A stretch of DNA of 38,284 nucleotides from Fonticula alba ATCC 38817 (Eukaryota; Protista; Nucleariida). A program made the translations under genes and the position numbers. The notes below the pieces were generated by a model. That model saw only the letters and a program-made list of their open reading frames with translations. It ran no database searches and was not told the DNA's origin. How positions within the stretch are numbered: position 1 is the stretch's first letter; the number at the start of each line of letters is the position of its first letter. This document shows positions 1 through 35,200 of this stretch, one piece after another. The stretch is taken from the NCBI GenBank assembly GCA_000388065.2, contig KB932201.1; one strand, given 5' to 3'.

Positions 1-540
1 GCAACACGTGAGTGAATTGCCACACGTGTTACATCGTGGGAATGATAGCATCCCAGAACAGCATTCCTCGGAGAGGAATGCGGGGTAGAACAACAGCCAG
101 GTGGCCGCCGAGGCCGAGCGGCATAAACGCTCGACCGAGGACGGAGATACGCGGGTGGGCGGGCCCAGCCGCGGGGTTCTCAGTTCCAACCCCTGACCGA
201 GCCCAAAGGTCAAAAAGGGGGACTCTCGTTGAGAGCCTCCTGAGAGCGAAAGCCTTAGCAGCTGTGTGTCGAAGAGTATACGGAAGTATAGCCGAAGCAC
301 CAGTTAGGCCGACGAACACCTGTTCTAAGGCTTCCTCTCGAACCCTTTTTAACATCCGAGTTCCTTTCTATTTTCGCTTGCCACTAACTCGTCTCAAGCC
401 GAGTTACTGACTCATCTGGTAACAGACGACCGTGAACCGCTGGTTGGTATGTCCCCTCCTTCATGCCAAGAGGTTACTAACCAGGTGGCAGATCACACTG
501 GTACCCTTCGTCAAGCCTCACTCACTTGACTTAGGCTTAA
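1..540. mobile_element. Putative inserted element (one end only, open at the window edge) interrupting a tRNA-Phe gene; class unknown
   Basis: Hand count 295/540 GC (~55%) vs ~69% for 601-720. Dense inverted repeats. Abuts a tRNA gene exactly where its T-arm should start. A diverged inverted copy is present at 31807-32200. No transposase, RT or terminal-repeat pair is visible, so mobility is inferred. Confidence 0.5.
29..355 (-). CDS. 108-aa hypothetical ORF inside the inserted sequence
   Basis: ATG 355 to TAA 29. R.EALEQ...GL.G.SA, AAK.FA..RL and G.GG..A are shared in the same frame with ORF 31883-32656(+). An antisense frame (12-410 +) is about equally conserved, so the coding strand is uncertain. 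Confidence 0.35.
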   Translation of the reverse strand: MLKRVREEALEQVFVGLTGASAILPYTLRHTAAKAFALRRLSTRVPLFDLWARSGVGTENPAAGPAHPRISVLGRAFMPLGLGGHLAVVLPRIPLRGMLFWDAIIPTM

Positions 541-599
541 CCCGTGTGAACCCTGCTACAATCTTCAGTCACACGCTCTCCCAACTGAGCTATCGCGGC
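541..599 (-). tRNA. tRNA-Phe(GAA): tRNA-Phe(GAA), 5' part only (nt 1 to ~47) with a 12-nt intron (562-551); T-arm and 3' acceptor strand absent
   Basis: Minus strand reads GCCGCGA TA GCTC AGTTGGGA GAGC G TGTGA CT GAA G [ATTGTAGCAGGG] T TCACA CGGG. D-arm is intact, anticodon stem TGTGA/TCACA pairs, the intron is at canonical 37/38, and intron CAG pairs with C32-U33-G34. No TTCRA loop or TCGCGGC follows. Confidence 0.85.
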
Positions 600-1212: not shown

Positions 1213-1308
1213 CGGGACGAGAGGGGGGCGAACAGCAGGGTGGTAGGGGAATAATCGCCCGGGGCGCGCCGAAGCCGGGGAAAAAGGACGGGCGCGGAAA
1301 AAGAGGCG

Positions 1309-1380
1309 AGGGCCCACCCGGGGTTGATCCGGGGACCTGTCGATCTGCAGTCGACCGCTCTACCACTGAGCTATAGACCC
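1309..1380 (-). tRNA. tRNA-Cys(GCA): tRNA-Cys(GCA)
   Basis: GGGTCTA TA GCTC AGTGGTA GAGC G GTCGA CTGCAGA TCGAC AGGTC CCCGG ATCAACC CCGGG TGGGCCC T: 72-nt cloverleaf with U73. TTTTT terminator a few nt downstream. Confidence 0.95.
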
Positions 1381-2148
1381 GTTCGCTGGAATCCAGCACC
1401 TCAGTGAAATTTATGAATCTTCTGTCATGGGCCATATGGCGCGCAGGCGGTTGCCGACGAAGCGCGGGGGGAGGGGTCCTGCTCGGTCCAGCGCCCCGAG
1501 ATCGAGAGCGGGAGCATTCCCCGACGGGCTGGGCGGGCCTCCGGGTTGTCTTTCGTGGTCTGCCGGTTCGACTGGGTCCGATGGGCTGGAACGAGCAGGC
1601 GGCCCGCAGGGTGGGGATGGGGCACTCGAGGCAAGCAGACATCCGGCGAAGTCCTGACAGGGGTGCCTGTGGCCGGATGAGGAGGATCATGCTCCGGGGC
1701 TTTTTGGCATTCTTTCTCGAGCGCGACTTTTGGGAAAGCCAGGCGGAGCCCTCTGCGGAGGCATCGCGCCACAGGGAGGCAGGGGGGGCGGGGGCCTGAT
1801 CCGGCCGCGAGGCCACGAAGCGAGAGTCCGCGAGGCAACCGAGGGCAGCATTGGCTTCCCAGTCCCATGGGGGAGTTCCCCCCGGTAAAAGGGGGCGTGG
1901 GCATGTGGGCTGCTCCCGGAAGCCGAGACACTCCGCATGTGTGCGCGTACTGCGGGTCAGGGGGCGCCGACATCTCCCGCCGGGGAGTTCGGCTGGTGGG
2001 CAGGGTGGAAGAGATGCCGAGGCCGAAGGGCGGTACTCTGGGGGTGGTGGTGCCAGGCCGCGGGGGCCCTCCTCCCGCTTCGAGAATGCGGAGCAAGAGT
2101 TACCGGCCGGTCGGCAGGGTATTGCATGAGAGCGGAACACCGGGGGGG

Positions 2149-2158
2149 NNNNNNNNNN
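2149..2158. other. Assembly gap (10 N) inside a poly-G tract
   Basis: N run flanked by G runs. Confidence 0.99.
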
Positions 2159-2326
2159 GGGGGGGGGGGGGGGGGGCCTGGGTTCAGGCATGGGGCCGGG
2201 GTATGTTGCTTGAGGGGAGCACGCCCGGCGAACCTCGGATAGGGCGAGACGCCGAGGGTGTACCAGGGAGAGAGGCAAGCCAGAAAGCAACAAGAGCCTC
2301 CCCGGACGACAATCCCCCATCTGAAG

Positions 2327-2398
2327 TCCCGATTAGTATAGTGGTGAGAATCCCCGCCTGTCACGCGGGAGGCCCGGGTTCAATTCCCGGATCGGGAG
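2327..2398 (+). tRNA. tRNA-Asp(GTC): tRNA-Asp(GTC)
   Basis: TCCCGATTAGTATAGTGGTGAGAATCCCCGCCTGTCACGCGGGAGGCCCGGGTTCAATTCCCGGATCGGGAG: 72-nt cloverleaf with G73. TTTTT at 2402-2406. Confidence 0.97.
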
Positions 2399-3538
2399 GT
2401 CTTTTTGCTTCACCACTCCCGGTGGTCGAGCATGCTCCCTCCCTCCGCCCTGTTGCGAGGGGGGGGGAGCCAGATCCGGGTCTGCATACATGGGGGGGCG
2501 CGGGCGGGCGGATTCCCGCTCGGCGCCAGCATGGCCCGCGAGTATAATACCAAGCCAGGGCTGGTGGCGGAACGGGCCGCGAAGTCGAAGCATGGCCGCG
2601 GCCAGCGCCGGGGGGAGCCCCAGTTCCTCCTCGCGGATGAGAGGGCGCCCTCTGGTGTGCAGCCATCGCATGGGCCGGGGGAGGGTGCGGGTCGGCGGGC
2701 ACGCCTCGAGAGATCTCTCCCCCGGGGGGGAGGGCGCGACGACTGACCCAATCAAGGGCCTGCTGCGTGTCGGCTATACCCGGGGGGGGGGGGGGGCCGT
2801 TCACGAGGGCAATGCATTTTGCCCGTACACACAGGGGCAGGCCATGCTCGGGGGCGTTCTAAAAAGAAGCAGGAATGACCTGTTCCGGAGCATCTGGTGG
2901 CTGAGGTGGGGGGCGCACTCGGAAAGCTGGCGCCCGTGCCATCGCCCTCGATCGGGCGAAGGGTTGCCCTGCCCAGCGTGTGTCGGCTGCCGGGGGGTGC
3001 GGCGAGACATCGGTGGCTCACTCGGGGAAGGGCCTTTTTCGGGGGAGAATTGAAACGCTCGGACTGATTCACCGAGGCTTGTTCTCCGATATGGAGATCA
3101 CGCCTCGGAAGAAAGCATTTCGTCTCGAGAGGTACAAGAAGGCAAGCGATGACAATAAAGCGCGCGCGGTCTTGTTGGGGGAAGCAAAAGTATTTACATC
3201 AGAGACTACTGGCTTGGGGGGGAGAAAGCCAGGCCAAGGAGGCAATGACTATCCTTTCTAGGGTAGCCGTACATGGGAAAGAGGGCGCGGATGCCGTCCC
3301 TTATATAGGGGTTAGGCGCATGGGAGAAGGAGCACCTTGCCCTCTTCCCTGGGCGCCGAGGGAGGAGGCGACCGGGCGGGGCGAAGGTCTGTACACGGAG
3401 GCGCGGCTCTCCCCAAGAGGAGAGGAGAGCCGGGGATCCGACTTCTCAGATATGGTCACGTGACAACCCGTGACCAATTCTGGGATTTGGGCGGCGAAGG
3501 TTACAGAATTTGAAGGTATTCGCGTTGCCCCCACATAT

Positions 3539-3612
3539 GGCCGCGTAGCTCAATTGGATAGAGCACCTGACTACGGATCAGGAGGTTGTGTGTTCGAGCC
3601 GCATCGTGGTCA
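3539..3612 (+). tRNA. tRNA-Arg(ACG): tRNA-Arg(ACG)
   Basis: GGCCGCG TA GCTC AATTGGATA GAGC A CCTGA CTACGGA TCAGG AGGTT GTGTG TTCGAGC CGCAT CGTGGTC A: 74 nt. TTTT follows within about 10 nt. Confidence 0.96.
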
Positions 3613-3669
3613 AATTCCATTTTGCCATCTTGGGCGCATCCTTTTTCTCAGTCTCTTCCGGCGGCTCAA

Positions 3670-3779
3670 GAGACAGAGAGAGAGGGGGGGAGAGAGAGGG
3701 GGGGGAGAGAGGGGGAGAGAGAGGGACATGCGTGGTTGGGCGGCAAGACAGGGAGTCCGGGGAACTACCGCCGTCGATC

Positions 3780-3820
<41 letters not shown>
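3670..3820. repeat. GA/GGA-rich purine microsatellite patches
   Basis: GAGAGAGGGGGGA-type repeats at ~3670-3725 and pure (GA)n at ~3783-3816. Confidence 0.85.
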
Positions 3821-3821
<1 letters not shown>

Positions 3822-4174
3822 CATCGGGCAAGCGCGGCGCGAGTTCACCAGTGGCGGCGCGCTTTTCCGCCACAGGGGTCTTCTCTCTTCGTGGCCCGCG
3901 GCACGCCGGGGCCTGACGGCCGGCCGGTGAAAGCACGGGCCGTCACAAAAGGTCATCCCGGCGACGACGGGGCGCATCCCGGCCAGAGAGGGCAGCGCCG
4001 ACCCCAGAGGGGACCACGCTCAGGGACTCGCCAGGGCCACGAGAGGAGCGGGCGTTTGGTTGCCCCTCGCACGAGTGGTGCGTGCCCGGGAGAGCCTCGT
4101 CGTGCGCGTCCTTCTCTCGCGGCCCTAAGCTGGGCTGTGGGTGGACACACCGGCCCCAAAAAGGAAGAGAGGCA

Positions 4175-4247
4175 AGCCCACTGTGGGGCTCGAACCCACG
4201 ACCCTGGGATTAAGAGTCCCATGCTCTACCAACTGAGCTAAACAGGC
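4175..4247 (-). tRNA. tRNA-Lys(CTT): tRNA-Lys(CTT)
   Basis: GCCTGTT TA GCTC AGTTGGTA GAGC A TGGGA CTCTTAA TCCCA GGGTC GTGGG TTCGAGC CCCAC AGTGGGC T: 73 nt. TTTTT terminator about 12 nt downstream. Confidence 0.96.
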
Positions 4248-7200
4248 TTACATGGCGTAGGGGGCTCGCCGCCGGAACAAAAACTCTTCATTTTCCACCC
4301 GGCTCCGAGGCCGAGCGAGGGTTTGCGCTTGTGTCTGTCCGCGCGAAGGCTCCTGACCCACTGCCGGGGCATCGACGCCTCGGAGCCACCGATGGCCAAG
4401 GCACGACGTGGGCAACCCCGGCGCTTGCAAAGCGAGGCTCGGCATGGGACACCCATGTCGGGAAGACACGCGGTCATCGGACGCCTGGGTCATCCGTTGG
4501 CGTTGTGGTTCCTCCATGGCGTCCGCGCAGGGCCCGACCTCGGGCGGGGAGGGGGCCATCGCAGCGGTGCCTGTGGGGGCTAAGAACGCAGGTGCGACCA
4601 TGATGAGAGGATCTGGCCTGCCACGCCGGCTGGCTGAGATGCCGGCTCCGGCGATGGAGGGTCAAAGGTGCCGGGGCCCCAGATGGTGCTATTTGCGACG
4701 CGGTGTGTGGGAAAAAAAGGGGCGGTGACGCGTCGGAAAGAGGCCACCCAACGGGTGGATCGGAGCAGGCACTCGGTGCTTGCGGCTGCCCATGGTGCCA
4801 GGAGAGCATCCTCCGAGCGCTCTTGGAAGGGGCCGGCCACACGTGCAGGCGAGCCGCGGGGCGGGGCCAACCAGCGCCTGCTTGACAGCATGCCTCCGCG
4901 CTCGCGCGGGCCGGCGGCCGCAGATGCCCCATGGCCTGCGTGGGGGATGCCATGCTCCCGGGCTTTGAGGTCATTGCAATAGGCACCGGGCCGAAGCATC
5001 GAGGGCGGGTCTGGTGTGCCAGCATGCAGCCAGAGGCGGCGCTCTCATTCCAGCGGAAAAAGTGACACAACCCGGGAATGATCAGTGCCAAGGTGGCGAT
5101 CACGACCGGCCGGGCAGGCGCCAGCAAGGTCCAAGACCAGACCCAGGCCTGTGCTCTCTGCCGGGTTGGCTAGCTGGCAGGGGGGGAATTGGCGGCGCCG
5201 CCGCTCCTGCATGAGTGAAACGCCCTCGCCGAGGGCGGCAGCCCATCTGGCTAGGGCTATGGCGCTGCCGTGTCGAGTGGAAGGGCATCGGCGCGTGGTT
5301 TTCGCCGACAGCGCCCCCGAGGCCTGCTTGCGTTGCTGGATGCGAGGGTATCGACATGGTGGACAGGCAGGGTGCTTGCAGAAGCGGAACCACTTGGGCA
5401 AAGGCCGGGCGGTGGCGGAGAACGCCGCCGCTCGCGGGGCCGAAGTCGCGACAGGATGCCATGATACCGACGCCCATTGCAGGGGGATTGGGCCACAGGC
5501 AACATTCATGGCGCATGTCTGCCTCGGAGTGATGGTGCTGCCAGCGAAGGGGACCCGACCATCCGCCAAGCAGCTGCCCTTTCAGCAGGCGGCCGCTCCC
5601 GCTGGGCTGGCTGGCTGCTGCCGTCGGCCAGGTAGCCGGTCTTTTTTCGAGGGCCTCCGGGTGTCAGGCCCGCCGGCAGCACCATAAATGCCCAGGCCCC
5701 ATCGAGCGCCAAAGCCCTTTGGCACTACCGGGGGCGGAACGTGTGCACTTGCCACACGGCCATCGGAAAACGCTTGCCGGCGGCAAGACCCTTTCCGATG
5801 GACCACATCACAGGAGGCAGACCTGCGGCCCGGATGCGCATGTTGCGTGGAGCTGGGCAGTGGCGATCGTACAAGCCGCCCATGAGGTGCGTTGTATCTT
5901 GACATCGATCAAGTGCGAGACACATGGACGGCCAGGGTCGATGGTGTGTAGGCCGCCGCACCGAGTGGCGTCGCCGACGCCCGGCCGGCTGGGTGGCGAC
6001 TTTGTCCCGCGAACGGCCATCCACCACGCGAGTCGAAACGCCTGGAAGAAGGCCAGGCGGCTCTCAGTCCGGGCGCTTGCTGTCGCATTGGCTCACCTGA
6101 TGGAACTTCCCGGGAGGGGCGTGCGCAGGTGCCCCGCCAAGCAGGCCACGCGCCCGGAGAATTAATCGGAGAGGTCGCGGCTGGCGTGGACAATGGCGGT
6201 TTCGGCGCCAGGGAGCCTTGGGCGCGCGGTCACCTCCGGCAGGGTGCACACCTGCCCAACGAGGGGAGGGGCGGGAAGCTCGGCTGGGGTGGCCCAGAGG
6301 ACCCGGCCGCCGGAAGGGCGTCCTCTGCTCTCGCTCGCAGACTCCCCCGGAGAGGCATGTGCGGTGGAATATGGGCGCACAGTGCCAGCGGGCCAATGTG
6401 GCGGCTCGCTCGGCGCGCGACGCCTGGCGCGCGACCGCGATCCACGGTGCTGGAAGCTGGCGGGCTTATTCTTGCCATGCCACGGAGTGGTGAATGGTCA
6501 TGGAGGGCACGGCCATTGGCCGGTGTGCCAGGCAGCACGTCTGCCCTGGGGGGCGGCGTGGGCGTGCCCCGCAGTCGCACCAGGCTCCCCGTGGTCAGTG
6601 GACATAGCATGGGGGCCTATGAACAGGTCACATGGCGGGATGGACGATGCCTGGCGAGGCGCGAGGCGCATGGCGGCGATGTCGGGGCCGGCCACCCCGG
6701 GCCGCAGCCACACAACGGCCGAGGTGTACCTCCTGACCACTTTGGGGGCGTGGGAGTGGCGGTACGCGAGCCCCGGCACGCGGCCGAGCAAGATCCCCAC
6801 GAGGTGAGCACGTCCTCCCGATGGCGCTGGGCGCATGCGTCACACGGGGTTCGAGGGGGCACCGTCGTCATCGGCGCGGGCGTGGCTTCCTCGGCCGGGG
6901 TGCCAGCCCGGGCGGCCGGGGACTTCGACGCCCGGTCGAGCAAGGACAACCGTCGCCATGGACCGGCGAAGCGTGTCCCGTGAAAGAAAAAGCCACAAAG
7001 TGGGCCGCCGGCGTTCCAAGAAGAAACCATTCGCGATCGAGGGGCCCCAGCCCTCGGCTCGGTCGATTGCCACATCCCAATGGCGGACCCTCTTGCGGAG
7101 GGAGCGCACAACCGCAGAGTATTGGCGGGGAAGGAAGCGGAAAAGGGCAGGGAGGCGGCAGTGCATCAGCCACGATCACCAAGGCAGCGGGGGAGGGTGT

Positions 7201-9526: not shown

Positions 9527-10846
9527 ATCCCCTCCCCAGTCGGGATCTTGGTTGCATGTGTGCCCACGGTCAAGCCCCATGTGGATCGCGTCGGGATGGT
9601 TGGTCGCTAAGAGCGCGCCGAGCCTGCCCGGGGGCTCGGAAGCTGCCGGTGGGCCACCTCCGCCAAGTGCCCTGGCTGCTGATCGATCGGCGAATGGCGG
9701 CCGTGCGGGCTGCCGGGGTGGCCTTCGCCGGAGCCAGCCCCAAGCCGCTGAGTGATTCCCCGCACACACACACACACACCTCGCAGGGGGCGGGGAAAGC
9801 GCCCCCCCCCCCCCCCCAGAATGCATGATGCACGGGGCCCGAGGCTTCGACCCGCGGAGCAGGCGTATGCAGGCCAGGGCGCCACAGGGGAAGGTGGCCG
9901 GGACAGCCGGCCGTGCTCTGGAGGCCCCCTCCTGGGAAAATGGGCCCCGTCCGTGTCGGCGGGCCGCGGGGTGCGCATCCGTGTGATGCGTTGGCACCGG
10001 GGGGCATGCTTGTCGCGGTCGAGACCAAGATGGCCCTCCGGAGTGCAGGTCCACTTGGGGCTGGGCGGAGAGGGGGGGGGGGGCGTTTTCCTTTCGCCAC
10101 GGGGGCCTTGCGAAGGGGGGCTCGCGCGCGGGCACCCGCCCGCGCATGGGCCAGGTCCCCCCTGCGGTCGGGGGGAATGTCGGCCCGAGGGCGGTCCGCC
10201 GGCGCCGAGGGAAAAAGTCTCCCCCTGCGGCCGAGGCGGGGGCCTGGCCGGGAAGGGTGCGGGCATCGAGAATTCCTCCTCGCCGAAGAGCCGATGGCCT
10301 TGGCGCCACGGGCCCGTGGCGGCTTCGGCAAACGGGGGAGCCCCGTTCGGCCGGGCATGGCGCGGCCCGATCCCGGGGCCCAGGGTGTCCAAGCTGCACC
10401 GGGGGTCTGGCCCCCTTCACTGGGCCCGGTGCGCGCCCCTGCAGAGCAACCGCGGCCCCGGAGCGATGACAAATGTGGGGGGTGGCCGCGCGGCGCCGTC
10501 TTGGCCGGCCGGCAGTCTCTCGGCCCCGATGGCGCCTGGCCGCCCCCCCCCAGCTGGCTGCGACCCAGTTCGGACCTCCCGCAGGATACTTGGGCATCGG
10601 CGCCCCCGGCCCCGGGGACAGAATGTCCCTCACATCTACTCGACTCCCCCCCCCCCTTCTTCCTCTCGCTGTCCCCTTGTCGCTTTCCCTTCCGCGCTCG
10701 CCCTCTCTCGGTCCCTGGCCCGTGGGTCCCCCCTTCGGAAAGAGCCCCTCTTCCCGACTCCTCCCCCCCCCCCCCCCCTCGAGCGGGGCATTTCTCCGAC
10801 ACCGGGCTGCCCTTGCCGCGGCCGCTGGGCGACGACGGACTCCGAA

Positions 10847-13800
10847 ATGAGCAGCTCGCCCTCGCCACCGAGCTCGCCGGAATTGAACCGACAGCCGGGC
10901 ATCCCGCTGGCGGACCTCGATGAGCGGCCTCCGGCCGCCACTCCCGGGCCGGCGGCCTCGACGAAGGGCGACCCGCCGGCCGCGTCGATCCCGATCTGGG
11001 AGTTATTTCGCTTCGCACGCAAGACGGACTTGGTCCTGATCGCGGTGGGGACCCTGGCGGCGGCCGTGCACGGGGCCCTGCAGCCGGTGTTTACCCTCAT
11101 CACCGGTGACATTGTCAATGCCTTTGGGGACCCGAATGCGGAGCTCGTACGGACGGTGGCCGAGCGGGTGGTGTGGTTCGCGGTGTTCGGGTTCATTTGC
11201 CTGGTGGCGGCCTATCTCCAAACGTCGAGCTTCATGTACACCTCCTATCGCCAGGCGACGCGGGTTCGGGAGCTGTACTTCCGGGCCCTGCTGCGGCAGG
11301 AGGCCGGGTGGTTTGACACGCAGAAGGAGGGGTCGGTGACGTCGCGCATCAATGCCGACATCATCCTGATGCAGGACGCCATCTCGGAGAAGTTCGGGGC
11401 ATTGGTGCAAAATGCGGCGCTCTTTGTGTCGGCCTTCTCGATTGCCTTTGTCCATTCCTGGCGCATGACGCTGGTGGTGGCCGGGCTGCTGCTGCCGCTG
11501 CTGCTGCTCTCGGGTGTCGTGTCTGGCCGGGTGCTTCGGGGCCTGGTGGCCGAGGGCCAGCATGCGCATGCGTCGGCCGGCGCCGTGGCCGAAGAGGTGT
11601 TCGGGGCCATGCGCACCGTGGCGGCCTTTGGCGGGGAGGTGCGCGAGCTGAGTCGCTATGCGCGGGCCCTGGCGCCGGCCGTGCGGACCGGCGAGCGTCG
11701 GGCCCACATCAATGGCCTGGGCATGGGCTTCATCTACCTGGTGACCTACTCCCTGTATGGGTTTGCCTTTTGGTATGGCTCGGGCCAGGTGAACCGGGGG
11801 CGCCTGGACACCGGGGAGGTGATCATCGTCTTCTTGACGGTGATGATGGCCTCGACTGCCATCGGGCAGGTGGGCCCGAGCCTGTCGAGCCTGGCGCAGG
11901 GGCTCGGCGCGGCGGCCGGCATCTTCGGGATCCTGGATCGCCGGCCGGCCATCGACAACCTGAGCGATGAGGGCCTGAAGCCGGAGACCGTGCTCGGGGA
12001 CTTGGCATTTGAGGATTTGCACTTTGCCTATCCCAGTCGCCCGGAGAGCCCGGTCCTGCGCGGGCTGAATCTGAATGTCAAGGCCGGCACCACGGTGGCC
12101 CTGGTCGGGCATTCGGGCAGCTGCAAGTCCACGCTCTTGCAATTGCTCGAGCGCTTCTATGACCCGGCGTCCGGGGCGGTGAAGCTGGATGGGGTGGATG
12201 TCCGGCGGCTGTCCATCCGATGGCTGCGGGGGACCCTGGCGCTGGTGCAGCAGGAGCCGGTGCTCTTTTCCGGCAGCGTGTCGGAGAATGTGCGCTTCGG
12301 CAAGCCCGGCGCCACGGATGCCGAGGTGGAGGCCGCCTGCCGGCTGGCCAATGCCCATGACTTTGTGACGCGTCTTCCGCAGGGGTACGCCTCGCAGGTG
12401 GGCGAGCGTGGGAGCCTGCTGTCGGGCGGGCAGAAGCAGCGCATCGCCATCGCCCGCGCGCTCATCTCCAATCCCAAGATCCTTCTCCTGGATGAGGCGA
12501 CGTCGGCGCTGGACACCCGGTCGGAGCGCGTGGTGCAGAATGCCCTGGACCGAGCGTCGAAGGGCCGGACGACGCTGGTCATCGCCCACCGGCTGTCGAC
12601 CATCCGCCATGCGGACCTGATTGTGGTGGTCGACGAGGGGGTCGTCGTGCAGCAGGGCACGCATGAGGAGCTCATGGCGGCCGGCGGCATGTATGCGGAT
12701 TTGGTCCTGTGCCAGGACATGGCCGAGAAGGCGGCCAGCATTTCCGACCCCCCTGGGTCGGATGTCGCCGGCGCCCTGGACGACGAGGACCCGGATGCCA
12801 TCGCGCCGGCGGAGGAGGACCCTTCGCTTGATGAGCTGCTCGATGTCAGCCCCCGGTCGGCGGGCGTGCGTCCGGCTCTGGCGAGCCGTCTTCCCCTGCC
12901 TTGCTCGCTCGGTTTGGTTCTTTTTGTCTGTCTGGTTCTTTTTGTCTGTCTGGTTCTTTTTTTTCTGTCTTGTTCTTATGCCTGTCTGTGTTTGCCTTTC
13001 CCCCCTTCCCCCTTGCCTCTCTTCCGATTTGCTGCGGTGCTTCGCATCGGCTTGTTGGCACGGCCTCCTGCTCCTCTTCCCCGCCGTCCCATCTGCTGGA
13101 TGCAGCGAAAGTACCAAAGCAGCCCGGTCTTCCGGGCATACATGCAATCCCGCGGGGACTGGCACTATATCCTGATGGCGGTGCTTGGGGCCGTGCTCTT
13201 CGGGGCCATCTACGCGCTGTATGCCTACTTTACGGCGGAAATGACGGAGACCCTGAACTTCAAGCGCGGGGCGGATCTCCGCGAGGCGGCCCTCCTCTGG
13301 GGCTTGGTGTATCTCGGCCTGGGGATATATGCCGCGGTGGCCAGCTACTTGATGAATGTCGGGCAGCTTGTGACGGCCGAGCGGGTGGCCGACCGGATGC
13401 GCAAGCGCACCTTCCAGGCCGTGGTGCGGCAGGAGCTGGCCTGGTTCGAGCGGCCGGAGAACGCCACCGGGGCCCTGGCGGCTCGGCTGTCGCTTTTCGC
13501 CGACAACGTCCAAGGCAGCATGGTCAGCTGGCTGACGGCCATCGTGGTGACCCTGACGACGGTGGTCGGGAGCCTGATCCTGGCGACGGTGTCCTGCTGG
13601 CGGCTGGGCCTGGTGGCGATGGCCTGCATGCCCTTTTCGCTGATGTGCGGCTATCTGTCGACCATGGCCACGGCAAGGCTCAATGACAAGGGCCGCCGGG
13701 CCTTCGAGCTGAGCGGCAACTGCGCGGTCGAGGCCATCACCAGCATTCGCACGGTGATGGCCTTGAATCGGCAGGAAGTCTTCGCCCGGCGGTTTTCCCA

Positions 13801-15035
13801 GGCCCTCCAGGGGCCGATGCGGGCCTGCTTGCGGAGCTCGCAGGTGCGTGGCCGGGGCCGGGTGTTTTTCCCTTCTTTTTTTTCGCCCCCCCCCCCCTCT
13901 CCCGGTGTGCGCCCCTGTGCAAGGCCGAGTGATGCTGACTCGCCATCGGGTATGCGGACCTCCTTGCCCTTCATTCTTGGGTGTGTCTCTCTTTCTGGTC
14001 TCCCAGCTGGTCGGCCTGGGGTTTGGCTTGGTGGATCCGATTTTCTACTTCATCTTTGCGCTGGCCTTCTGGTATGGTGCGCGCAATGTGGAGGCCGGGC
14101 TGTGCGACTTTTCGCAGGTCATCCGCGGCGTGTTCGCGGTGGTCTTCGGATCGACGACGGCCGGGCAGATCGCGGCCCTGGCTCCGGGGTATGCTCGCGC
14201 GCGGGGGTCGCTGGTGGCGCTCTTCCAGGTGATTGATCGCCAGCGGGCGATCGACCCGCTGGCCGGTGCTGGCCACGGGCAGGAGGGCCGGCCCACGACC
14301 CAGGGGTATGTGGAGTTCCGCGAGGTGCACTTCGCGTATCCCCGGCGCCCGAACCAGCTGATCCTGCGCGGGGTGAGCTTCACGGCGGAGCCCGGCCAGA
14401 CCGTGGCCCTGGTGGGGACTTCGGGGTCCGGGAAGTCGGCGCTGATTCGGCTGCTGGAGCGCTTCTATGACCCGACCGCCGGGCAGGTCCTGGTTGACGG
14501 GGTGGATGTGCGGGATATCCCGGTGGCGGACCTCCGCCGGGGCATGGGCCTGGTGCACCAGGAGCCGGTCCTCTTTGCCGGGACCATTCGCGAGAACATC
14601 CTCTACGGCCGGCCGGAGGCCACCGAGGAGGAGGTGCAGGAGGCGGCCGAGGCGGCCAGCGCCCATGCCTTCATCCAGGCCCTGGAGTCCGGGTACGACA
14701 CGGACGTCGGCATCCGGGGGGGCCAGCTTTCGGGCGGGCAAAAGCAACGCGTGGCCATCGCCCGGGCGATCGTCCGGAAGCCGAGCATCCTGCTGCTGGA
14801 TGAGGCGACATCGGCGCTGGACTCCGAGTCGGAGGCCATCGTGCAGGAGGCCCTCGACCGGGCCTCCAAGGGCCGGACGACGATCGTGGTGGCGCATCGG
14901 CTGGCGACCATTCGCCATGCGGACAAGATTGTGGTCATCGATCGGGGGGTGGTCGCGCAGCAGGGCACGCACGATGAGCTGATGGCCGCCGGCGGGGTGT
15001 ATTCCCAGCTGGTCAACCAGCAGCTGGCCCGGTAG
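10847..15035 (+). CDS. ABCB1: Full-length ABCB (MDR/P-glycoprotein-like) exporter, 1261 aa; exons 10847-12865, 13106-13843, 14007-15035
   Basis: TMD1-NBD1-TMD2-NBD2 order. WELFRFA..TD N-terminal motif, LSGGQKQRIAIARAL and LSGGQKQRVAIARAI signatures, ILLLDEATSALD Walker B twice, Q-loops and H-loops present. Two phase-0 GTGCGT...CAG introns (240 and 163 nt) join the frames. Start chosen as the Met before the conserved N-terminus. The symbol denotes the subfamily, not proven orthology. Confidence 0.93.
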
Positions 15036-17724: not shown

Positions 17725-17739
17725 NNNNNNNNNNNNNNN
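17725..17739. other. Assembly gap (15 N) next to a poly-C tract
   Basis: N run followed by a C run. Confidence 0.99.
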
Positions 17740-20324: not shown

Positions 20325-20377
20325 GGCACACCTCTCGCCAGTGGCTCGGACCCCGAACCACTGGCGAGAGGTGTGCC
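20325..20377. repeat. Perfect 20-bp inverted repeat (hairpin) with 13-nt spacer
   Basis: GGCACACCTCTCGCCAGTGG (20325-20344) is the exact reverse complement of CCACTGGCGAGAGGTGTGCC (20358-20377). The spacer adds a TCGG/CCGA stem. Confidence 0.95.
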
Positions 20378-23097: not shown

Positions 23098-25344
23098 TCA
23101 TTCGTCGGGGGTGCTGCTGGGGGACGGCGGGCAGGCAAGGCCATCGGCGCTGAGGGTGTGGCCCGGGGCGCAGGCCACACACTGGACGGTGCGCTGGGCC
23201 GGGTCGTGGGGGTGGCGCACGAAGCAGCTGAGGCAATGGGCCGGGCAGGGGACGGCATAGCGGGCCTTTTGGGTCTGGTAGAAGAGCCCCCAGCCGGGCT
23301 GGGTGAGGGCGTCGGCGGTGCACCGGGCGGGCGGGGCCACATCGAAGGAGCCCGGGTGGAGTTCCTTGACGCGCGGGATGCTGAGGGGGCTGGCGGTGCA
23401 CTGGAGGCAGCCGACGCCGAGGCCGGTGCTGCAGGTGCCGCACCCGCCGCCGCAGGGGAGACACTGCTTGGAGTGCTTGTAGTAGCCCTCCGGGCAGGTG
23501 GCGAAGCACTGGGTGCCCTGGACCAGGGCGTGGCCGAACTTGCAGGCGGTGCAATTGGTGTTGCTGGTGCAGGTGGCGCAGTTGGGGTCGCGGCAGGGCT
23601 GGCAGCGGCGGTTGTTGTCGAGGAAGAAGCCCTCCGGGCACTGGGCCGCGCAGTACACGCGGGCCCCCTTCTCCCGGGGCATGACCTGGTACATGCCGGA
23701 CTTGCAGGAGGTGCAGTTGTTGGTGTAGAGGGTGCAGGTGTCGCAGTTTTCGTGGCACGGCCGGCAGCCCTGCTCCGCGGGCGGCAGGTCGAAGTCCCAA
23801 GTGGCGCGCGAGCCGCAGGGGGAGTAGCAGTCGTCGACCTCCAGGCGGTAGGAGGGGAAGCAGCGGTAACAGGAGAAGCCATCGTCGCAGAGGGCGCAGC
23901 CGGCCACGCAGGGCATGCACACGCCCTTGTTGTGGAAGAAGGTGGCCGGGCAGGTGTGCAGGCAGTTGTTGTCGTGCAGGTTGAAGGCGGAGCTCTTGCA
24001 GGCCAGGCAGATGCCGGGGTCTTCGCTGGCGCACTGGGCACACTTGGGGTCGGTGCAGGGGGTGCACCGGCCGGCCGGCGAGTCGCGGGCCGTGCCCAGT
24101 GGGCAGGTGTCGCCGCAGGTGCCATCCGGCCGGGCGAAGAAGCCCCGCATGCAGGCCAGGCAGATGGCCGGGTCGGTGGGGTCGCACTGGCGGCAATTGG
24201 GCCGGCAGGGCAGGCAGGCCCCGGCGTCGGTTTGGACCGTGGTGGCCGGGCAGGTGACCGGGGCGTCGGGGTCGCCGTTGGCCCGGTAGGGCCGGGTGCA
24301 GGCGCCCACCGGGACCGGGCCCTGGGGGAAGGTCTTGGAGCTGTGGGCCAGGAGCAGGCGGCCGGCCGGGCAGCGGGTGCAGTCCTTCGGGCCGGGGCCG
24401 GCGCACTCGTCGCACGAGGCGTGGCACTCGAAGCAGATGCCGGGGCGGCTGCACTTCAGGAGGTGCGCGTGCTCCGGCCGGCCGGGGGTGTCGTCGGTGC
24501 TGGGGACCTCCGGCCGGGCCATGGGCCAGGCATCGCAGTCGAAGGTGTCCGGGACCAGGTGCCGCGGGATGCAGTGGGCCCCGCAGCGGACATTGCCCGG
24601 GGTGGGGCAGTCGCTGACGCAGCCCCGGTCGAGGGTCAGCCAGTGGCCCGGGGCGCACTGGGCGCAATCTTCATTCAGGTGGGGGTGGGCCATGGCCAGG
24701 CAGCCGGGCAGCTCCAGGGGGCCCGGCCGGCAGAGGCCCTGGCCGGCGGCCTGGAACCGGCAGACCGCGCACTGGTTGTGGTTGCCGGGCACGACGTTCC
24801 AGCAATCGGCCGGGCCGATTTGCACGAGGCCCGTGCTGGACACCGCCTTGTCGGGCAGCTCGCTGTCCAGGTAGGCGTATCCGTCGACCAGGCGGAATTC
24901 GTGGCTGTACTGCAGGCACCGCAGGTCGCCGGCTTCGTAGCGGGCCTGAAGGCAGCGCCGCAGGCCGGGGAAGCAGTAGCCCCCGTTGCGGGCCTCGCCT
25001 ATGTCCGGGCCGGGCGGGGGGGGGGGGGGGGGGNNNNNNNNNNNNNNNNNNNNNNNNNNNNNNNNNNNNNNNNNNNNNNNNNNNNNNNNNNNNNNNNNNN
25101 NNNNNNNNNNNNNNNNNNNNNNNNNNNNNNNNNNNNNNNNNNNNNNNNNNNNNNNNNNNNNNNNNNNNNNNNNNNNNNNNNNGGGGGGGCCGTGCGTCGG
25201 TCCCGTACCGGGGCCATTGCAGTTGGCGCTGATGGGCCGGGGGGGCTGCTGTGCGCGCGCGAGGCCCAGAATAACCGAGGCGGCGAGGAGTAGAAGGCCC
25301 GGGAGGAGGCGCCAGCCCGGGCGCCGGCGCTCGAGAGGGGGCAT
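23098..25344 (-). CDS. Secreted Cys-rich protein with tandem furin-like (CxxCxxC) repeats, ~750 aa; spans an N gap
   Basis: N-terminal signal-like LLPGLLLLAASVILGLARA. Many repeats such as CHASCDECAGPGPKDCTRC, CRPNCRQCDPTDPAICLAC and CHENCDTCTLYTNNCTSC. Strong GC3 bias. No C-terminal TM segment. Frame continuity across the gap at 25034-25182 (Pro-rich flanks) is assumed. Confidence 0.88.
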   Translation of the reverse strand: MPPLERRRPGWRLLPGLLLLAASVILGLARAQQPPRPISANCNGPGTGPTHGPPXXXXXXXXXXXXXXXXXXXXXXXXXXXXXXXXXXXXXXXXXXXXXXXXXXPPPPPPPGPDIGEARNGGYCFPGLRRCLQARYEAGDLRCLQYSHEFRLVDGYAYLDSELPDKAVSSTGLVQIGPADCWNVVPGNHNQCAVCRFQAAGQGLCRPGPLELPGCLAMAHPHLNEDCAQCAPGHWLTLDRGCVSDCPTPGNVRCGAHCIPRHLVPDTFDCDAWPMARPEVPSTDDTPGRPEHAHLLKCSRPGICFECHASCDECAGPGPKDCTRCPAGRLLLAHSSKTFPQGPVPVGACTRPYRANGDPDAPVTCPATTVQTDAGACLPCRPNCRQCDPTDPAICLACMRGFFARPDGTCGDTCPLGTARDSPAGRCTPCTDPKCAQCASEDPGICLACKSSAFNLHDNNCLHTCPATFFHNKGVCMPCVAGCALCDDGFSCYRCFPSYRLEVDDCYSPCGSRATWDFDLPPAEQGCRPCHENCDTCTLYTNNCTSCKSGMYQVMPREKGARVYCAAQCPEGFFLDNNRRCQPCRDPNCATCTSNTNCTACKFGHALVQGTQCFATCPEGYYKHSKQCLPCGGGCGTCSTGLGVGCLQCTASPLSIPRVKELHPGSFDVAPPARCTADALTQPGWGLFYQTQKARYAVPCPAHCLSCFVRHPHDPAQRTVQCVACAPGHTLSADGLACPPSPSSTPDE
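25034..25182. other. Assembly gap (149 N) flanked by poly-G, inside the Cys-rich CDS
   Basis: N run. Confidence 0.99.
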
Positions 25345-29721: not shown

Positions 29722-29817
29722 CCGGGGCATCTTCATTGTTCTACCCCGGGGCATCTGCATTGCTCTGCACCGGGGCATCTGCATTGCTCTACACCGCGGC
29801 ATCTGCATTGTTCTATC
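29722..29817. repeat. 24-bp minisatellite, 4 units (CCGGGGCATCTGCATTGYTCTRCM)
   Basis: Units start at 29722, 29746, 29770 and 29794. A degenerate unit precedes them at ~29700. Confidence 0.92.
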
Positions 29818-31806
29818 CCGGTGTCGGGGCCCGGCTCGCTGGCACGCCCGGCGGGCATTGCGGTTGAGGGCAAGGCCCGTGGTTTGGGGATGAACAGACG
29901 CCCGGCATGCCGGTCAGGGCCGGATCACAGGCGACACGACGGCCGGCGTGCACCTGGGACGGGGGCGGCTCCTGTCGCCTGAAGCTCAAGATGGCAGTTC
30001 TGATTGCCCACCGGCGGCCAGCACGGGTCCTCCTCGCGCTCTTTTCCTTCCTGCCAGCTGCATGCGTACTGGGACTCGGCCTTCCACATGGGGGCCAGCC
30101 GATGTGGCGGACCTGACACGAGGCAATCGAGGGTGGCCGAGGACGTGGCGCGGGGGGGATTCCCCCACGGTGGAGTGTGGTCATTCGTCGTGTGTCATTA
30201 CGTTATGCATGTGTGTGCATTTGTGTGTATGCTCGTGACTACGTACGCTGGGTGTGTGCATGGATCGGCACTTGGGTGGACACATGGCCGAGACCGTGCT
30301 TGTTGCCCAGTCCCTGGCCGATACATACCGTGGCTATGGGTGCCGGTTGGGGGGACTTTGCGCCCCAGCGATCGCTGGCCAGCAGGCGAGTGGCAACCTG
30401 TTGGAACCAGGCCCGCCAGGCGGTTGGGCCGGTGGGGCGTGCTCTCGGCCTTTTCGGCTGTTCCAAATTCGGTGCCATGTACATGCATGTGTTTCTCCGC
30501 CTCCTTGACCGCAAAGTAGTCCCCCATCCGGCTCGCGGCAGGGGCACGCCCAAAAGTGCCCTCGGCCGGGCATCGCCCGCGGTATTCGAGTGCCAGGCCA
30601 ACAGGATGGCGCAACATCGCGTCCACAGGCGATCCGAGAGCATGGTGCTCCCTCTCGCTTTTGCCCATGCGAGCGCCCCGGTCTGGCGCGGCTATCCCAG
30701 CCATGGCGTTGAGCAGCTCGGGGCGATGCGCGGCCTGGCATCTCCATGGCCGGACATATGTCACCCTCGCGCAACGAGGCGACTTCGAGCACGCTGGCCT
30801 GCTTTGAAGGTTGCTTGGCGGCATTGTCGGCGGTGGGAGGACGTCGATGGCAGTCGCCGGGGGGGGGGGGGGGGGGAGTTTCCATGGAGAAAGGGGCTGG
30901 CTGGGCGTGATGGCTGGTTCTATGGTGCCGAGGAGCCGGAGCCGGAGGAAGGGCCGAGGGAGGCTTGCGCGCGCTTTCCGTTCCCGAGCATGGCTTGACG
31001 GGCAGCAGTGTGCGCTCAAATCGAGCCGGACAGCGTGCGAATATGTGCCCATGGCCAGAGTGCCATGCGTTGATGTGAACAGAGATGCCAATCGAGAAGT
31101 TATGGCGGGTTTTATAATGTGGGATAATGCGAACCCAACAACCAACGCATGGGCCTGTGATATGGCGGCCCTTTGTCGGTTCTTGCTTGATGCACCTCGG
31201 CCTGTGTCTGTCGACGTCCGCTGGTTGGGCGTGGACGATCAGGATATAGCTATCAGCATCGGGCGCGTGCATGTGCTGGCTCTTCATCCACAATAACCTC
31301 CCTCCCCCTCCTCCGCTGCTCCTCTGCTCCGTTGCTCCTCTGCTCCATTGCTCCTCGGGTTTCTCCTGTCTGCATTGTCTTTTTCTGCTACCCACGAACA
31401 TTTGTGCATGTGAATCGCCTCACCAACCGGTCGAGCTTGCCCGAATCGCGGGGCCGGGTTTTCTTCGGGGCCGGGCTTCCCCGGACGGCTGATTGGGTCG
31501 GGTTCTCGAGCGGGCCGGCCGTCCTTCGACGGTTTGAATGGGGCCTGTTCTACTGGGCCTCGTCGAGGACGTCTCTCCCGGGTCATGCCCAGCGCATGCT
31601 CGGAATCCATGGATGGGCTCTACTCCGATGTTCCGATCACTAACGCTCTGCCTGTTTGTGAGTGGTGTGTCGGTCGCCCGCAGCATCCGGGGCTCTTGTG
31701 GTTTCTCTCAGCCTCCCCGTTGAGTCTCTCTCTCCCTCTGTATGTGTTTTCGCGTCAGCGCGCGTCTGCGCGGGTGCGGGGATCAGGGGGGGGGGGGGAC
31801 GCCCTG

Positions 31807-32200
31807 GGCATGAAGGATTAGCGTCTCGGTCCTGGGGATATGCTGCCGTGCGCTTCTTGATGAGTCAGCAACTCGGCTTGAAGTGGGTGCGCGGCAAGTG
31901 ACATTGGCCATAACTTATGGTTGTTTAGCAGGGCTCCGAGGGGAGGCCTTGGAGCAGCTGCTCACAGGCCTGGCTGGTACTTCAGCGAGACGATGGCACG
32001 CGCCTCCCCAGGCAGCGGCGAAGGTCTTCGCTGGTGGGCGGCTCCCCCGGAAGGAGCCTCCGCTTATGGGCAACGGCTTCGGCCGAGAGGCCGGCCTGAA
32101 AGCCTCGCGCATGCACGTGCCCTTCCTTCTTCCCGGGATCGGTGGCCGCATGGCCGCCACCTTGCAGCCGGACTCCTCCCGACGCGAATGCCGCTCAGAG
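31807..32200. mobile_element. Diverged inverted copy of positions ~52-467
   Basis: Collinear blocks vs the minus strand of the left-end sequence: 11/11 (31807-31817 vs 467-457), 22/23 (31859-31881 vs 416-394), 36/49 (31938-31986 vs 339-291), 14/18 (32139-32156 vs 111-94). Homology is solid; the mobile-element label is inferred. Confidence 0.65.
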
Positions 32201-35200
32201 GTCAAGCCGTGTCATGGCAGCCCGGCACGCGCCATTCGCGGCCCAGCAAGTGAGTTGGCTTTGCCCATCCAGGGCATCGACCACACTGCAGTGCCGAGCC
32301 CCGTGCCTCACCAGGCCAGAGCAGTGTGCTCCAAGAGGGCACAGAACCTCCGGGACACCGGACGCCAGGCAGACAGGGCCTGGTTCCCGCGACTACACCG
32401 TCCTATCTCGGTCGAATGGCATGTTCTTCACGCTCTGCTGCTTGTGTTGCTCTGCTTCCCGTCCCTTTGCCACGCCGGTGGTGGTTTACCGAAACCCCAG
32501 GGGGGGCAACCTGGCGGATGTGTGCCTTCGAGCGAAGGAGATTGTGGAAGACTGCGGTGCGCCGAACGCCCGGGCGTCCGCCTCCCCCGGGCGGGTATAC
32601 CCTCATCCAGCCGGCCCTGTGCCGGTGGACAACCATCCCGGCAGATCTACACGTAGCCCATTGGATAATCCATCGCCCAGGAGGCCCAGCCGTGCGGGCC
32701 CTGCTGTCGGGCTGTTTTTTTTGGTGGGATGGCTGGGCAGCGGCTCCCGGGACCCACCCCCCCCGATGCACGGAAGGCCCCATGCCCGGGCGGTGGCAGA
32801 AAGGGGTATGCCAGCCGCGCCGCGGCGGTGATCAGAGTCGTATGTCCTGTGAGAGACGGCGTGGAACTGTCGCTTGTCTAATGTTGGTCGCGTTCGAGCC
32901 CCCGGAATTGCTTTCTCGCCAGCGGAAAGCCAAGGGGCGAAGTGAAGTGGTGGCAGGGAGGCTGCCGTCCACTTTCCAGCGGCCGGCGAGGAGCTCGGGG
33001 CCCGTCATTTCTGATGGCGTGGGACGCATCCGTCGACAGTAGAAGGTCGCCTTTTATGCTGGCTGGCCCGGATTCTCGCGCGAGTGGCGTATCCGCACCC
33101 CCCTCCTGTGCCTCTGTCCGCGGATGTGGATTTTTCGGCGCCCGGGGGACAGCTCTTCGACCTTGTCGAAGCGCTGGGGATCCCACCCGCGGGCCGAGGG
33201 ATGGCTCTGCACGTGTGCCGCGCCTCCTCGCGCCGCACGCACACGCCGGACGCGCTGTGGCCACACGTACAACGTGGTGCCTGCCTCCTCATCTACGCGC
33301 GGTTGTAGGTGTGCCCTGTCAGTTGTGCCGGCGCGCAGGTATTCGATGGATGTAATGGCACTAGCTGCCTGCTTGGCTCTTTTCTCTCCTTCCCCCCACA
33401 CAAACGCAAACGCCGGCACACGCTGTGGGTCGCTGGGTGGCATCTTCCCCCTGCGCTGCTCTTTCTTGGCGTCCGGACTCATTGCCGCCACCAGCAAGCC
33501 GGTCAATTGGTGCGCCGGGGACCTGCCGGGTGGAGGCTCTGCAGCGGGCGGGGCATGCATTTTAGGCGGTTATTTCTGCTGGGTATGTGTCTGGGAGGGG
33601 GAGGACCTTCACGGGGCGATCCTGACGGGCAACTGACGAGTGACAGCCCGGCCCTTCGGGAGTCCCGACACCTTGCCTGGGGGCTGGCCCGGCGCCCATG
33701 CTTGGGCTGTCTCGAAGGGAGGGAGGCCTCCCGTGCGGTTGCCCGTGCTCTGTGTGTCTGCGCTTGTGGGGCGTGTGTTGTCATTGTCGGGGCGTCGGGG
33801 ATGACGTCGGGGGAGGCCTGGAGCAGGAGGGCAAGGCTTGCTGGCAGATGTGCGTTCTTTGAGATCTGAGGCGCATGAAGTCGCGGGTTGCACACGGTGC
33901 CAGGGGACCGGTCGGTGGCCTGATCGGGATGCTATGGGTGGGTAGTCTGATGTGTGTGTGCGTGTGTGTGTGTATATATTTGTGTGTCTATGTGTGTGTG
34001 TACAGCAACAGGGCCACCTCGATCTCGCGAGGGGGGGCCCCGGACTGCGAGGAATGGGCCCCCCGTGGCCCGAGGGGTGCGCCGACTACCACCTGGAGCG
34101 GTGCCAAAGGAGCCTGATCTGCGGGCCAATGCCGATTGTCTGGGGTGGCGCGAGCGGGTGAGCACCGGAGCTCGTGCGACAGCGATCCGCCGGCATCTTT
34201 CAGCGGGATCTTCTCTCCTGGACCCGGGGTGGAGGTGGCTTGCACGGTGTCAGCTTCACCGAAAGGCGGCGCGAGTTCGAGGTCTTTGCGCGTGGCTTGG
34301 ACGGAGGGTGTGACGTGCGCACGTAAGGGCCCCATGCCCGAAGGAAGGGAGAATGGTCCAAGTCTCTTCTTCTCTGGTGACGGGGCCAAGAAGGCAAGGG
34401 GCGAGAAGCCGTGCGCATTGCCGGACTACGGTGTGCTTCGAGGCCCGCGAGGCCTCCGCTCCGGCGGGAAAGATAAAAGCCGAGCCGGACGCTCCGAGCG
34501 GGGAAGCCTCGGCGAGGGGCCAGGGAAGGGCCGCACTTCGGGCGGTGCAAGGCTCGGACCACACCTTCAGGTGGCATGTCGGGGCAGCCGTGTGCGCGTG
34601 TGTGTCACCAGCTGTGGCCGGTAGATGTGCATTGGTCCGAGGATGACCCTGTGGGACCGGTCCCGGGTGCGCGATCAGGGTGGGGGAGCAGAGGCAAGGT
34701 CAAGGATCGGGAGGTACAGGGAGAAGGGAGCGAGGAGAACGGTGGCCACCGAGTTGCTGGGGGGGTCTTTTCATCAGGGAGGAGAGAGCGAGCGAGGGGC
34801 CCGGCCTGCTGAGGCCCGACCGAAGGCGGTAGGTGCCTCCCGAAGTCCAGTGGTAAGGCCGCGGCAGCTGTCAACGTATCAGGGGGCTCGGAATGGCCCC
34901 CACTGGCAGTGACCGGAGAATCCCGCCCGCGGCGGCGGCGGTGGCGGCAACTGGAGATGCCTGGGGCGACCAAGGGAGTGGAGTGTTTTCGAGCCCGGGG
35001 TTGGAATGTCAAGGCCCGGCAACCCCCTCAGTTGGGCGGCTGGGGGAGGGGCGCGGCGTCAACGTAGGCGAGCCTGGTCCCCGCGTCCGGGGAAACAGAC
35101 GCCGGTCTTCTGGCCGGTCGGGGTAGATTCCAGGATGCCTCACCGGGGGGAGGACGCGCATGCAAACTCACACAGACACACACACACACACACATTTACA

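Follow-up and report, generated by a model that had tools for sequence, protein, structure and literature searches.

The sequence flagged near the right end of our window (38,284 nucleotides of Fonticula alba ATCC 38817, position 1 of which is position 4,670,216 of record KB932201.1 in plus orientation; assembly GCA_000388065.2) is an inverted homologue of a sequence at the left end of the window, and both belong to a small family of non-coding repeats with at least three, probably four, copies in both orientations within these 38 kb. We call the left-end member copy A, the flagged stretch copy B, and the further members C and D (Table 1). The repeat unit is roughly 450 bases long (about 0.45 to 0.52 kb). 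Copy B is best explained as a dead, neutrally decaying member of this small non-coding family. For the family as a whole we prefer, at a little under an even chance, an old, low-copy, non-autonomous mobile element, whose least decayed member, copy A, would lie in a tRNA gene. Repeats are reported to make up 0.36% of the F. alba genome, and a mobile family with its freshest member in a tRNA gene would therefore be a rare handle on the mobile DNA of this sister lineage of the fungi.

Homology of copies A and B

A sequence-only reading of the window had proposed the homology from four collinear blocks, and all four are present. GGCATGAAGGA occurs at 31807-31817 and as the reverse complement of 457-467, GATGAGTCAGYAACTCGGCTTGA is identical at 22 of 23 positions between 31859-31881 and the reverse complement of 394-416, the 49-nt block is identical at 36 positions, with transitions making up 11 of its 13 differences, and the 18-nt block is identical at 14; the gap between the first two blocks measures 40 versus 41 nt, as claimed. 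The pairwise alignment by BLASTN (word size 7, scores +1/-1) is significant, with E of about 1e-22: positions 157-470 align in inverted orientation with 31804-32122 at 62% identity over 321 columns (E = 2e-22 to 4e-22). MAFFT carries the alignment on to about positions 50 and 32200, with 222 of 379 positions identical (58.6%) plus 36 gap columns, and the global match spans from the common 5' block (467-457/31807-31817) to the common 3' block (67-53/32184-32198). The local-alignment score is 77, compared to 15.3 ± 2.3 for shuffled sequences. These alignments of the DNA letters confirm that the homology of A and B is real. A 29-nt segment present in A and C is missing from B. The clustering of the matches into conserved blocks goes mildly beyond chance (P about 0.035), and the block with 22 of 23 identities is not strong evidence of selection.

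Table 1. Coordinates of the repeat copies and of neighbouring features in the window
Feature	Position	Strand	Remark
Copy A core	40-470	-	Best preserved member
Copy A 5' block	467-457	-	
Copy A 3' block	67-53	-	GGAATGCTGTTCTGG
Hairpin inside copy A	212-237	-	GGCTCTCAACGAGAGTC, then CCCCCTTTTT
Stretch after the 3' block of A, to the window edge	1-39	-	Hairpin AACACGTG...CACGTGTT (1-32)
Stretch between tRNA remnant and 5' block of A	471-539	-	Hairpin GTTAAGCC...GGCTTGAC
Truncated tRNA-Phe(GAA)	540-599	-	In copy A orientation; read from the letters
Copy B	31804-32215	+	Decayed, non-coding family member
Copy B 5' block	31807-31817	+	GGCATGAAGGA
Copy B second block	31859-31881	+	GATGAGTCAGCAACTCGGCTTGA
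Copy B 3' block	32184-32198	+	GCGAATGCCGCTCAG
Copy C	22104-21651	-	Third copy, more decayed than A; A+B profile
Copy C 5' block	22104-22095	-	GGCATGAAGG
Copy C 3' block	21665-21651	-	GCGAATGCTGCCCAG
Copy D	38000-37763	-	Probable partial copy; nhmmer, local alignment

Further copies and the extent of the unit

The left-end sequence had been described as a family member, not as unique flank; this holds, and the family is larger than was claimed, with copy C and probably copy D in addition. Copy C was found with an nhmmer profile of A and B (E = 1.2e-13). By BLASTN, positions 342-73 of A match 22040-21769 of C at 59% identity over 275 columns (E = 8e-12), and the match of B to C is far weaker (E = 3e-4). 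About 60 nt are deleted from C, the GATGAGTCAG block among them, and an insertion containing (GGCC)n stands upstream of its 3' block. Copy D is recognised by its core, AAAGGGGCTTCGAGAGGAAGCCTCAGAGC, which is identical to A at 26 of 29 positions (nhmmer E = 0.008 to 0.013; local-alignment score of 29 versus 14.2 ± 1.8), and nothing is recognisable downstream of this core. Upstream of it, D has a weak collinear match into the 471-530 stretch of A, which scores 17 without the core, compared to 11.1 ± 1.8 (12 of 1000 shuffles reach 17, P about 0.012), and which is spaced 77 nt from the core in both copies. From this collinear alignment, 471-539 is probably part of the ancestral unit. B and C may only seem to begin at GGCATGAAGG, since 60 nt would be undetectable at such divergence.

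No further copies were found in 88 kb from four other F. alba loci or in 6.3 kb from beyond the right edge of the window (about 94 kb of F. alba DNA outside the window in total). Metagenome and prokaryote collections, scanned by 21-mers, yielded three isolated chance matches of that length and no homologues. Within the window, the self-matches 16199/33911 and 1181/3669 were set aside as microsatellites, and a circular permutation or tandem origin, considered because of the motif CAAGTGAGT upstream of A and downstream of B, was dropped because the motif is not significant.

Similarity between the flanks of the copies is not significant in any pairwise comparison, and the unit is therefore discrete. 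This observation bears on an origin by old local segmental duplication of non-coding DNA, for example of a promoter or UTR module with a TGAGTCA bZIP-type site, of which only a slowly evolving stretch would remain recognisable. All copies indeed lie within 38 kb of a possibly subtelomeric region, an annotated ORF on the same strand follows B after about 200 nt, C is located about 1 kb downstream of H696_01006, and the conserved block contains TGAGTCA. We nevertheless consider such an origin improbable: the flanks have no residual similarity although the units are 59 to 62% identical, copy C has no TGAGTCA block, the ORF downstream of B has no codon-position G+C signal and is probably spurious, and the loci of the paralogous cysteine-rich genes carry no copy.

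Relationships and base composition

The homologies A-B, A-C and B-C are each significant at the sequence level, and copy A is central among them (local-alignment scores of 77, 49 and 34, respectively). Three-point K2P branch lengths are 0.29 for A, 0.38 for B and 0.36 for C, and lineage-unique changes above chance number 12.5, 27.5 and 27. Over all estimates the branch of A is 0.19 to 0.29, which makes all copies old. Two ages of insertion had been proposed, and these branch lengths support them only weakly.

Copy B is shifted toward G+C as had been noted (64.5% versus 56.7% in A, with 66.7% in the window), and the first 255 nt of A have 50.8% G+C versus 61.7% in B. The shift had been ascribed to a drift toward host composition, which is not established, because the changes unique to B and to C have no bias from AT to GC (AT>GC versus GC>AT, 15 versus 18 in B and 16 versus 15 in C), and because the excess in A is partly parallel change: A-unique sites count 27 GC>AT versus 5 AT>GC, and parallel change in B and C would account for about 18 of the 27. 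The low G+C of A is part of an island of 48 to 54% G+C between the tRNA start at about 600 and the hairpin with its T5 run at about 215, within surroundings of 67%. Copy A lies beyond both thresholds for repeat-induced point mutation, RIP (TpA/ApT of 1.21, threshold >0.89; (CpA+TpG)/(ApC+GpT) of 0.91, threshold <1.03), in contrast to B, C and the window as a whole. No CpA or CpG context was seen at the C>T and G>A sites specific to A, and much of their excess may be parallel change in B and C.

A truncated tRNA-Phe gene next to copy A

Upstream of copy A and in the same orientation lies the 5' part of a tRNA-Phe(GAA) gene. Over tRNA positions 1 to 37 (599-563), the 5' strand of the acceptor stem, the D arm, and the anticodon stem and loop are flawless. 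An insert of 12 to 13 nt follows at the canonical intron site after 563, TCACA (549-545) then restores the anticodon stem, and after CGGG(TT) all likeness to a tRNA ends; up to this break the remnant is otherwise flawless over 43 to 48 positions plus intron. A T arm and the 3' strand of the acceptor stem were found nowhere in the window, and neither ARAGORN nor Rfam calls the remnant. A tRNA with a giant intron and a permuted tRNA were rejected as the 3' half is absent from the window. The A box of the remnant, TAGCTCAGTTGG, is perfect, and a B-box-like sequence, GGTTCACACGG, agrees at about 6 of 9 specified positions and comes 4 nt early.

Judged through copy D, the homology of copy A starts at most about 10 nt from the tRNA break, and since the D match reaches into 471-530, the ancestral unit itself probably began that close to it. 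At the other end, TTCACTCACGTGTT (17-4) resembles the tRNA junction TTCACACGGGTT (550-539), with a rough P of 0.1 to 0.2 for letters compared by eye, and the pair is a possible target-site duplication. If so, the T stem of the tRNA would start within three bases of the window edge. Copy A may thus interrupt the tRNA gene, whose 3' half is not in the window; the other end of copy A lies beyond position 1. Upstream of B, C and D we found no tRNA-like sequence, the one candidate upstream of D being non-significant; for copy B this agrees with the sequence-only reading, which had seen no tRNA half near position 31735, where ARAGORN and Rfam both have no match.

A special case of a mobile element would be a tRNA-Phe-derived SINE, with A as the full-length copy and B to D truncated at the 5' end or decayed. 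Like tRNA-derived SINEs, copy A would join a tRNA-like 5' part, whose A box is intact, in sense orientation to a non-coding body, here of about 0.5 kb and without coding capacity, and the copies vary in completeness and divergence: D includes 471-530, and B and C are detectable only from GGCATGAAGG. In contrast to such elements, the tRNA fragment is undecayed and carries an intron-like insert next to a body that is 19 to 29% diverged from the common ancestor, its B box is poor, a T5 run lies inside the unit, neither B nor C ends in an A-rich or simple-repeat tail, the copies found are very few and locally clustered, and the host genome is very poor in repeats. Taken together with the lack of tRNA-like sequence upstream of B, C and D, these differences make the SINE reading quite unlikely in our view.

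Coding capacity, RNA families and transposon hallmarks

The sequence-only reading had named as its own refutation that both copies are exons of an ordinary host gene family; frame, phase and Pfam checks show a non-coding unit instead. Copy A has stop codons in all frames, the mismatches between A and B are spread over the codon phases without periodicity (47/56/54), no ORF on or near the copies has a Pfam domain, and the longest ORF of A (108 aa) has no relatives among 1.84 billion representative proteins. We therefore rejected a protein-coding exon or gene family.

Known RNA families were searched for as well. Rfam gave nothing credible on copies A, B and C at E values up to 10, and in the window only four tRNAs reach the gathering score. 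RNase P/MRP, SRP, snRNAs, ribozymes and group I and II introns were rejected on this basis, with the tRNA cluster included in the search. RNase P and MRP RNAs, of which the RPR1 product is an example, have two conserved regions, CR-I and CR-V, that form helix P4 from far apart, and a terminal helix P1. A CR-I-like GGAAGCCUUAGA in our unit pairs only about 70 nt away with 200 nt still to follow (compared with the consensus by eye), and this assignment was dropped. A 5-bp terminal helix, GGCAU/AUGCY, between the common 5' and 3' blocks of the copies is possible. Inspection for hammerhead and C/D box motifs found a CUGAUGA-like string that deviates in both copies, and both readings were dropped; a telomerase RNA was rejected because a telomere-repeat template is absent.

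Hallmarks of transposons are likewise missing. The only candidate for terminal inverted repeats at copy A is a pair of 11 nt with 91% match (5-15 with 518-528); six pairs of this kind occur in 700 nt, which is chance level, and the flanks of B and C contain none of the terminal inverted repeats of a DNA transposon or MITE. Candidate TG/CA boundaries of a solo LTR in A, B and C give no matching flanks, where a duplication of 4 to 6 bp would be expected, and a host gene, not element sequence, lies upstream of copy C. A-rich tails are absent at B and C, where target duplications are not recognisable either, and the ORFs of the window encode no transposase or reverse transcriptase according to Pfam.

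Folding of the unit

Copy A is predicted to fold into many perfect helices of 7 to 11 bp, with a z score of -3.84 relative to shuffled versions, compared to -0.13 ± 1.25 (minimum -3.09) for 29 other windows of 430 nt in the region; the stretch 1-606 reaches z = -4.5. B and C fold at background (z = -0.92 and -0.79). The opposite strand of A folds equally well (-3.84 versus -3.74), and the signal could therefore be one of DNA hairpins no less than of RNA. Relative to column-shuffled alignments, the consensus fold has z = -3.6 to -4.0 in sense and -0.5 to -1.6 in antisense, and this predicted excess on the sense strand hints at constraint at the RNA level. Alifold returned 14 to 18 apparent compensatory pairs. 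Excess covariation is not demonstrated, because shuffled alignments give an equal number (18 observed versus 17.3 in column-shuffled controls) and the helices of A are lost in B and C. Indeed, when the 140 predicted pairs of A were traced in B, 53 were unchanged, 24 had changed and still paired, and 44 were broken, with G-U and A-C outcomes equally frequent (14 versus 15); copy C has the same pattern of loss. With most helices broken and G-U and A-C outcomes equal, B and C look like products of neutral decay. The hairpin at 212-237, whose T5 run pairs in the predicted fold with an A5 run at 343-353, is missing from B and C together with its T5 run, and it marks a boundary in copy A between a 5' part of 51% GC and a 3' part of 67% GC.

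The fold brings in the main alternative explanation, namely, that copy A is a lineage-specific gene for a structured non-coding RNA with the truncated tRNA-Phe as leader promoter, and that the other three copies arose from it by local duplication and are dead. Precedents exist in fungi: the RPR1 and SNR52 genes of Saccharomyces cerevisiae are transcribed by polymerase III from tRNA-like leaders, as is Zod1, and Yarrowia has dicistronic tRNA-5S genes (PMC2566860). The outlying fold of copy A with B and C at background, the low-GC island described above, the upstream tRNA part in the same orientation with its perfect A box and a weak B-box-like GGTTCACAC, the possible GGCAU/AUGCY helix and the greater stability of the consensus fold in sense would all fit such a gene, and local clustering fits tandem duplication. 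As in RPR1, SNR52 and the tRNA-5S genes, a structured RNA some hundreds of nucleotides long would be preceded by a tRNA-type promoter in matching orientation, again within Holomycota. The fold signal could, however, be DNA-level, as the strands fold equally well; the helices of A are not kept in B or C, compensatory pairs are not in excess over the controls, the internal T5 run would be a likely stop signal for polymerase III, the resemblance to a B box is poor, Rfam has no match even at E = 10 and the ORF search among 1.84 billion proteins found no relatives. The putative gene also differs from RPR1, SNR52 and the tRNA-5S genes in that its RNA matches no known family, and we could not fit RNase P/MRP onto it, neither by the conserved regions nor by P4; in comparison with RPR1 and SNR52, the leader would be a recognisable half of a specific tRNA gene. 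On balance, an RNA gene with a tRNA leader is possible but doubtful, and the specific version in which copy A of F. alba, an early-branching holomycotan, encodes an undescribed structured RNA of about 385 to 430 nt that captured the 5' half of tRNA-Phe as its promoter, with B to D as decayed duplicates, is somewhat less probable again. If true, such a gene would illustrate a way in which leader promoters for polymerase III, like the one of yeast RPR1, come into being.

Origin of the family

The copies are a low-copy repeat that is unclassified, and the interest in them hinges on the junction with the tRNA gene. A mobile element, our preferred reading, is the simplest account because the unit is discrete with unrelated flanks, a fresh-looking copy A sits at a tRNA break and the older copies are without structure. 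It gains support from A being closest to both B and C and the sole copy with an exceptional fold, and from the tRNA remnant adjoining the unit in the same orientation, with D extending the homology toward the junction. Against it speak the low repeat content of F. alba (0.36%), the presence of all four copies in 38 kb with none in about 94 kb elsewhere, the age of all copies, and the hint of RNA-level constraint in the consensus fold, as well as the lack of terminal inverted repeats, LTR ends, tails and a nearby transposase or reverse transcriptase. The sequence-only reading had taken the copies to be insertions of transposable elements, and this was not borne out by any terminal inverted repeat, LTR end, poly(A) tail, target-site duplication or element-encoded protein.

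In our model of a mobile element, copy A would be the most recent copy, would retain the structure of the active source element and would have inserted into the tRNA-Phe gene of a tRNA cluster. The other three copies would be older insertions that later acquired substitutions, deletions and a microsatellite insertion and lost their hairpins. Movement may have been by cut-and-paste or by reverse transcription, with a polymerase III transcript as template and priming at its tRNA-like head.

Insertion into tRNA genes has a precedent in the Dada DNA transposons, whose specific target sites lie within genes for tRNAs and snRNAs (Kojima and Jurka 2013, PMC3706591). They are known from the protist Perkinsus and from animals, encode a DDE transposase and duplicate 6 to 7 bp of a fixed site (PMC3706591). 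Similar to Dada, the F. alba family may represent a discrete element in a multicopy tRNA gene with non-autonomous, internally deleted copies, of which one end may adjoin the tRNA fragment and the other unrelated sequence. In contrast to Dada, the ORFs of the window contain no DDE transposase, no tRNA gene is visible around B, C or D, and the break comes after the anticodon stem and not at the reported Dada target sites. The length of about 0.5 kb, the lack of coding capacity and the many perfect short hairpins of copy A resemble a MITE; the difference lies in the terminal inverted repeats, for which the sole candidate pair of 11 nt is subterminal and expected by chance. If true, the mobile reading could point to targeting of tRNA genes outside the groups where it is known.

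Genomic surroundings

The window is eukaryotic in character, with 66.7% G+C, four tRNA genes at 1.3 to 4.25 kb and a few intron-containing protein genes; a frame of 470 aa at 18.2 to 19.6 kb is 100% identical to F. alba H696_01005. The tRNA cluster (1308-4248) comprises Cys(GCA) on the minus strand, Asp(GTC) and Arg(ACG) on the plus strand and Lys(CTT) on the minus strand, in addition to the tRNA-Phe remnant, and it is located in a 10.8-kb stretch without coding signal. The second most stable window of 430 nt (3201-3630, z = -3.09) lies upstream of and includes tRNA-Arg on the plus strand, and at about 3456-3475 there are E-box motifs of the TCACGTGA type, which resemble the CACGTG pair at 1-32. 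Palindromes with a perfect center occur at 20325-20377 (53 bp, 91% self-complementarity) and 10476-10552 (77 bp, 70%). Assembly gaps (N runs) are at 2149-2158, 17725-17739 and 25034-25182, the last of them within the cysteine-rich gene described below.

Real genes in the window have a third-position G+C of 0.85 to 0.95. Codon-position G+C is flat, at about 0.65 each, in the annotated hypothetical proteins at 32416-33042 (plus strand), 34200-34577 (minus strand) and 29813-30285 (minus strand). Owing to this flat G+C and the lack of a Pfam match, these three are probably spurious ORFs, possibly on non-coding transcripts, and the annotation near the copies deserves caution as several of its hypothetical proteins have no coding signal. 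The window ORFs at 29-355, 42-410, 2490-3053 and 6357-6983 have no entry on record.

A full-size transporter of the ABCB (P-glycoprotein-like) type, 1261 aa in length, is encoded at 10847-15035 on the plus strand; its gene probably has two introns, at 12866-13105 and 13844-14006, with GTGCGT donors. Its halves are 68% identical at the DNA level, and the annotated protein is on record but missing from the homology-search matches. H696_01006 (23098-25344, minus strand) encodes a cysteine-rich, furin-repeat/VSP-like protein with four F. alba paralogues (50 to 69% identity) that lie roughly 25 to 125 kb from scaffold ends, like this window, and the family may be one of subtelomeric surface proteins. 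Logan contigs, which are short and derive from public sequencing runs, encode proteins that are 39 to 41% identical to H696_01005 and H696_01006, and these sequences suggest that the public reads include a relative of Fonticula whose genome has yet to be sequenced.
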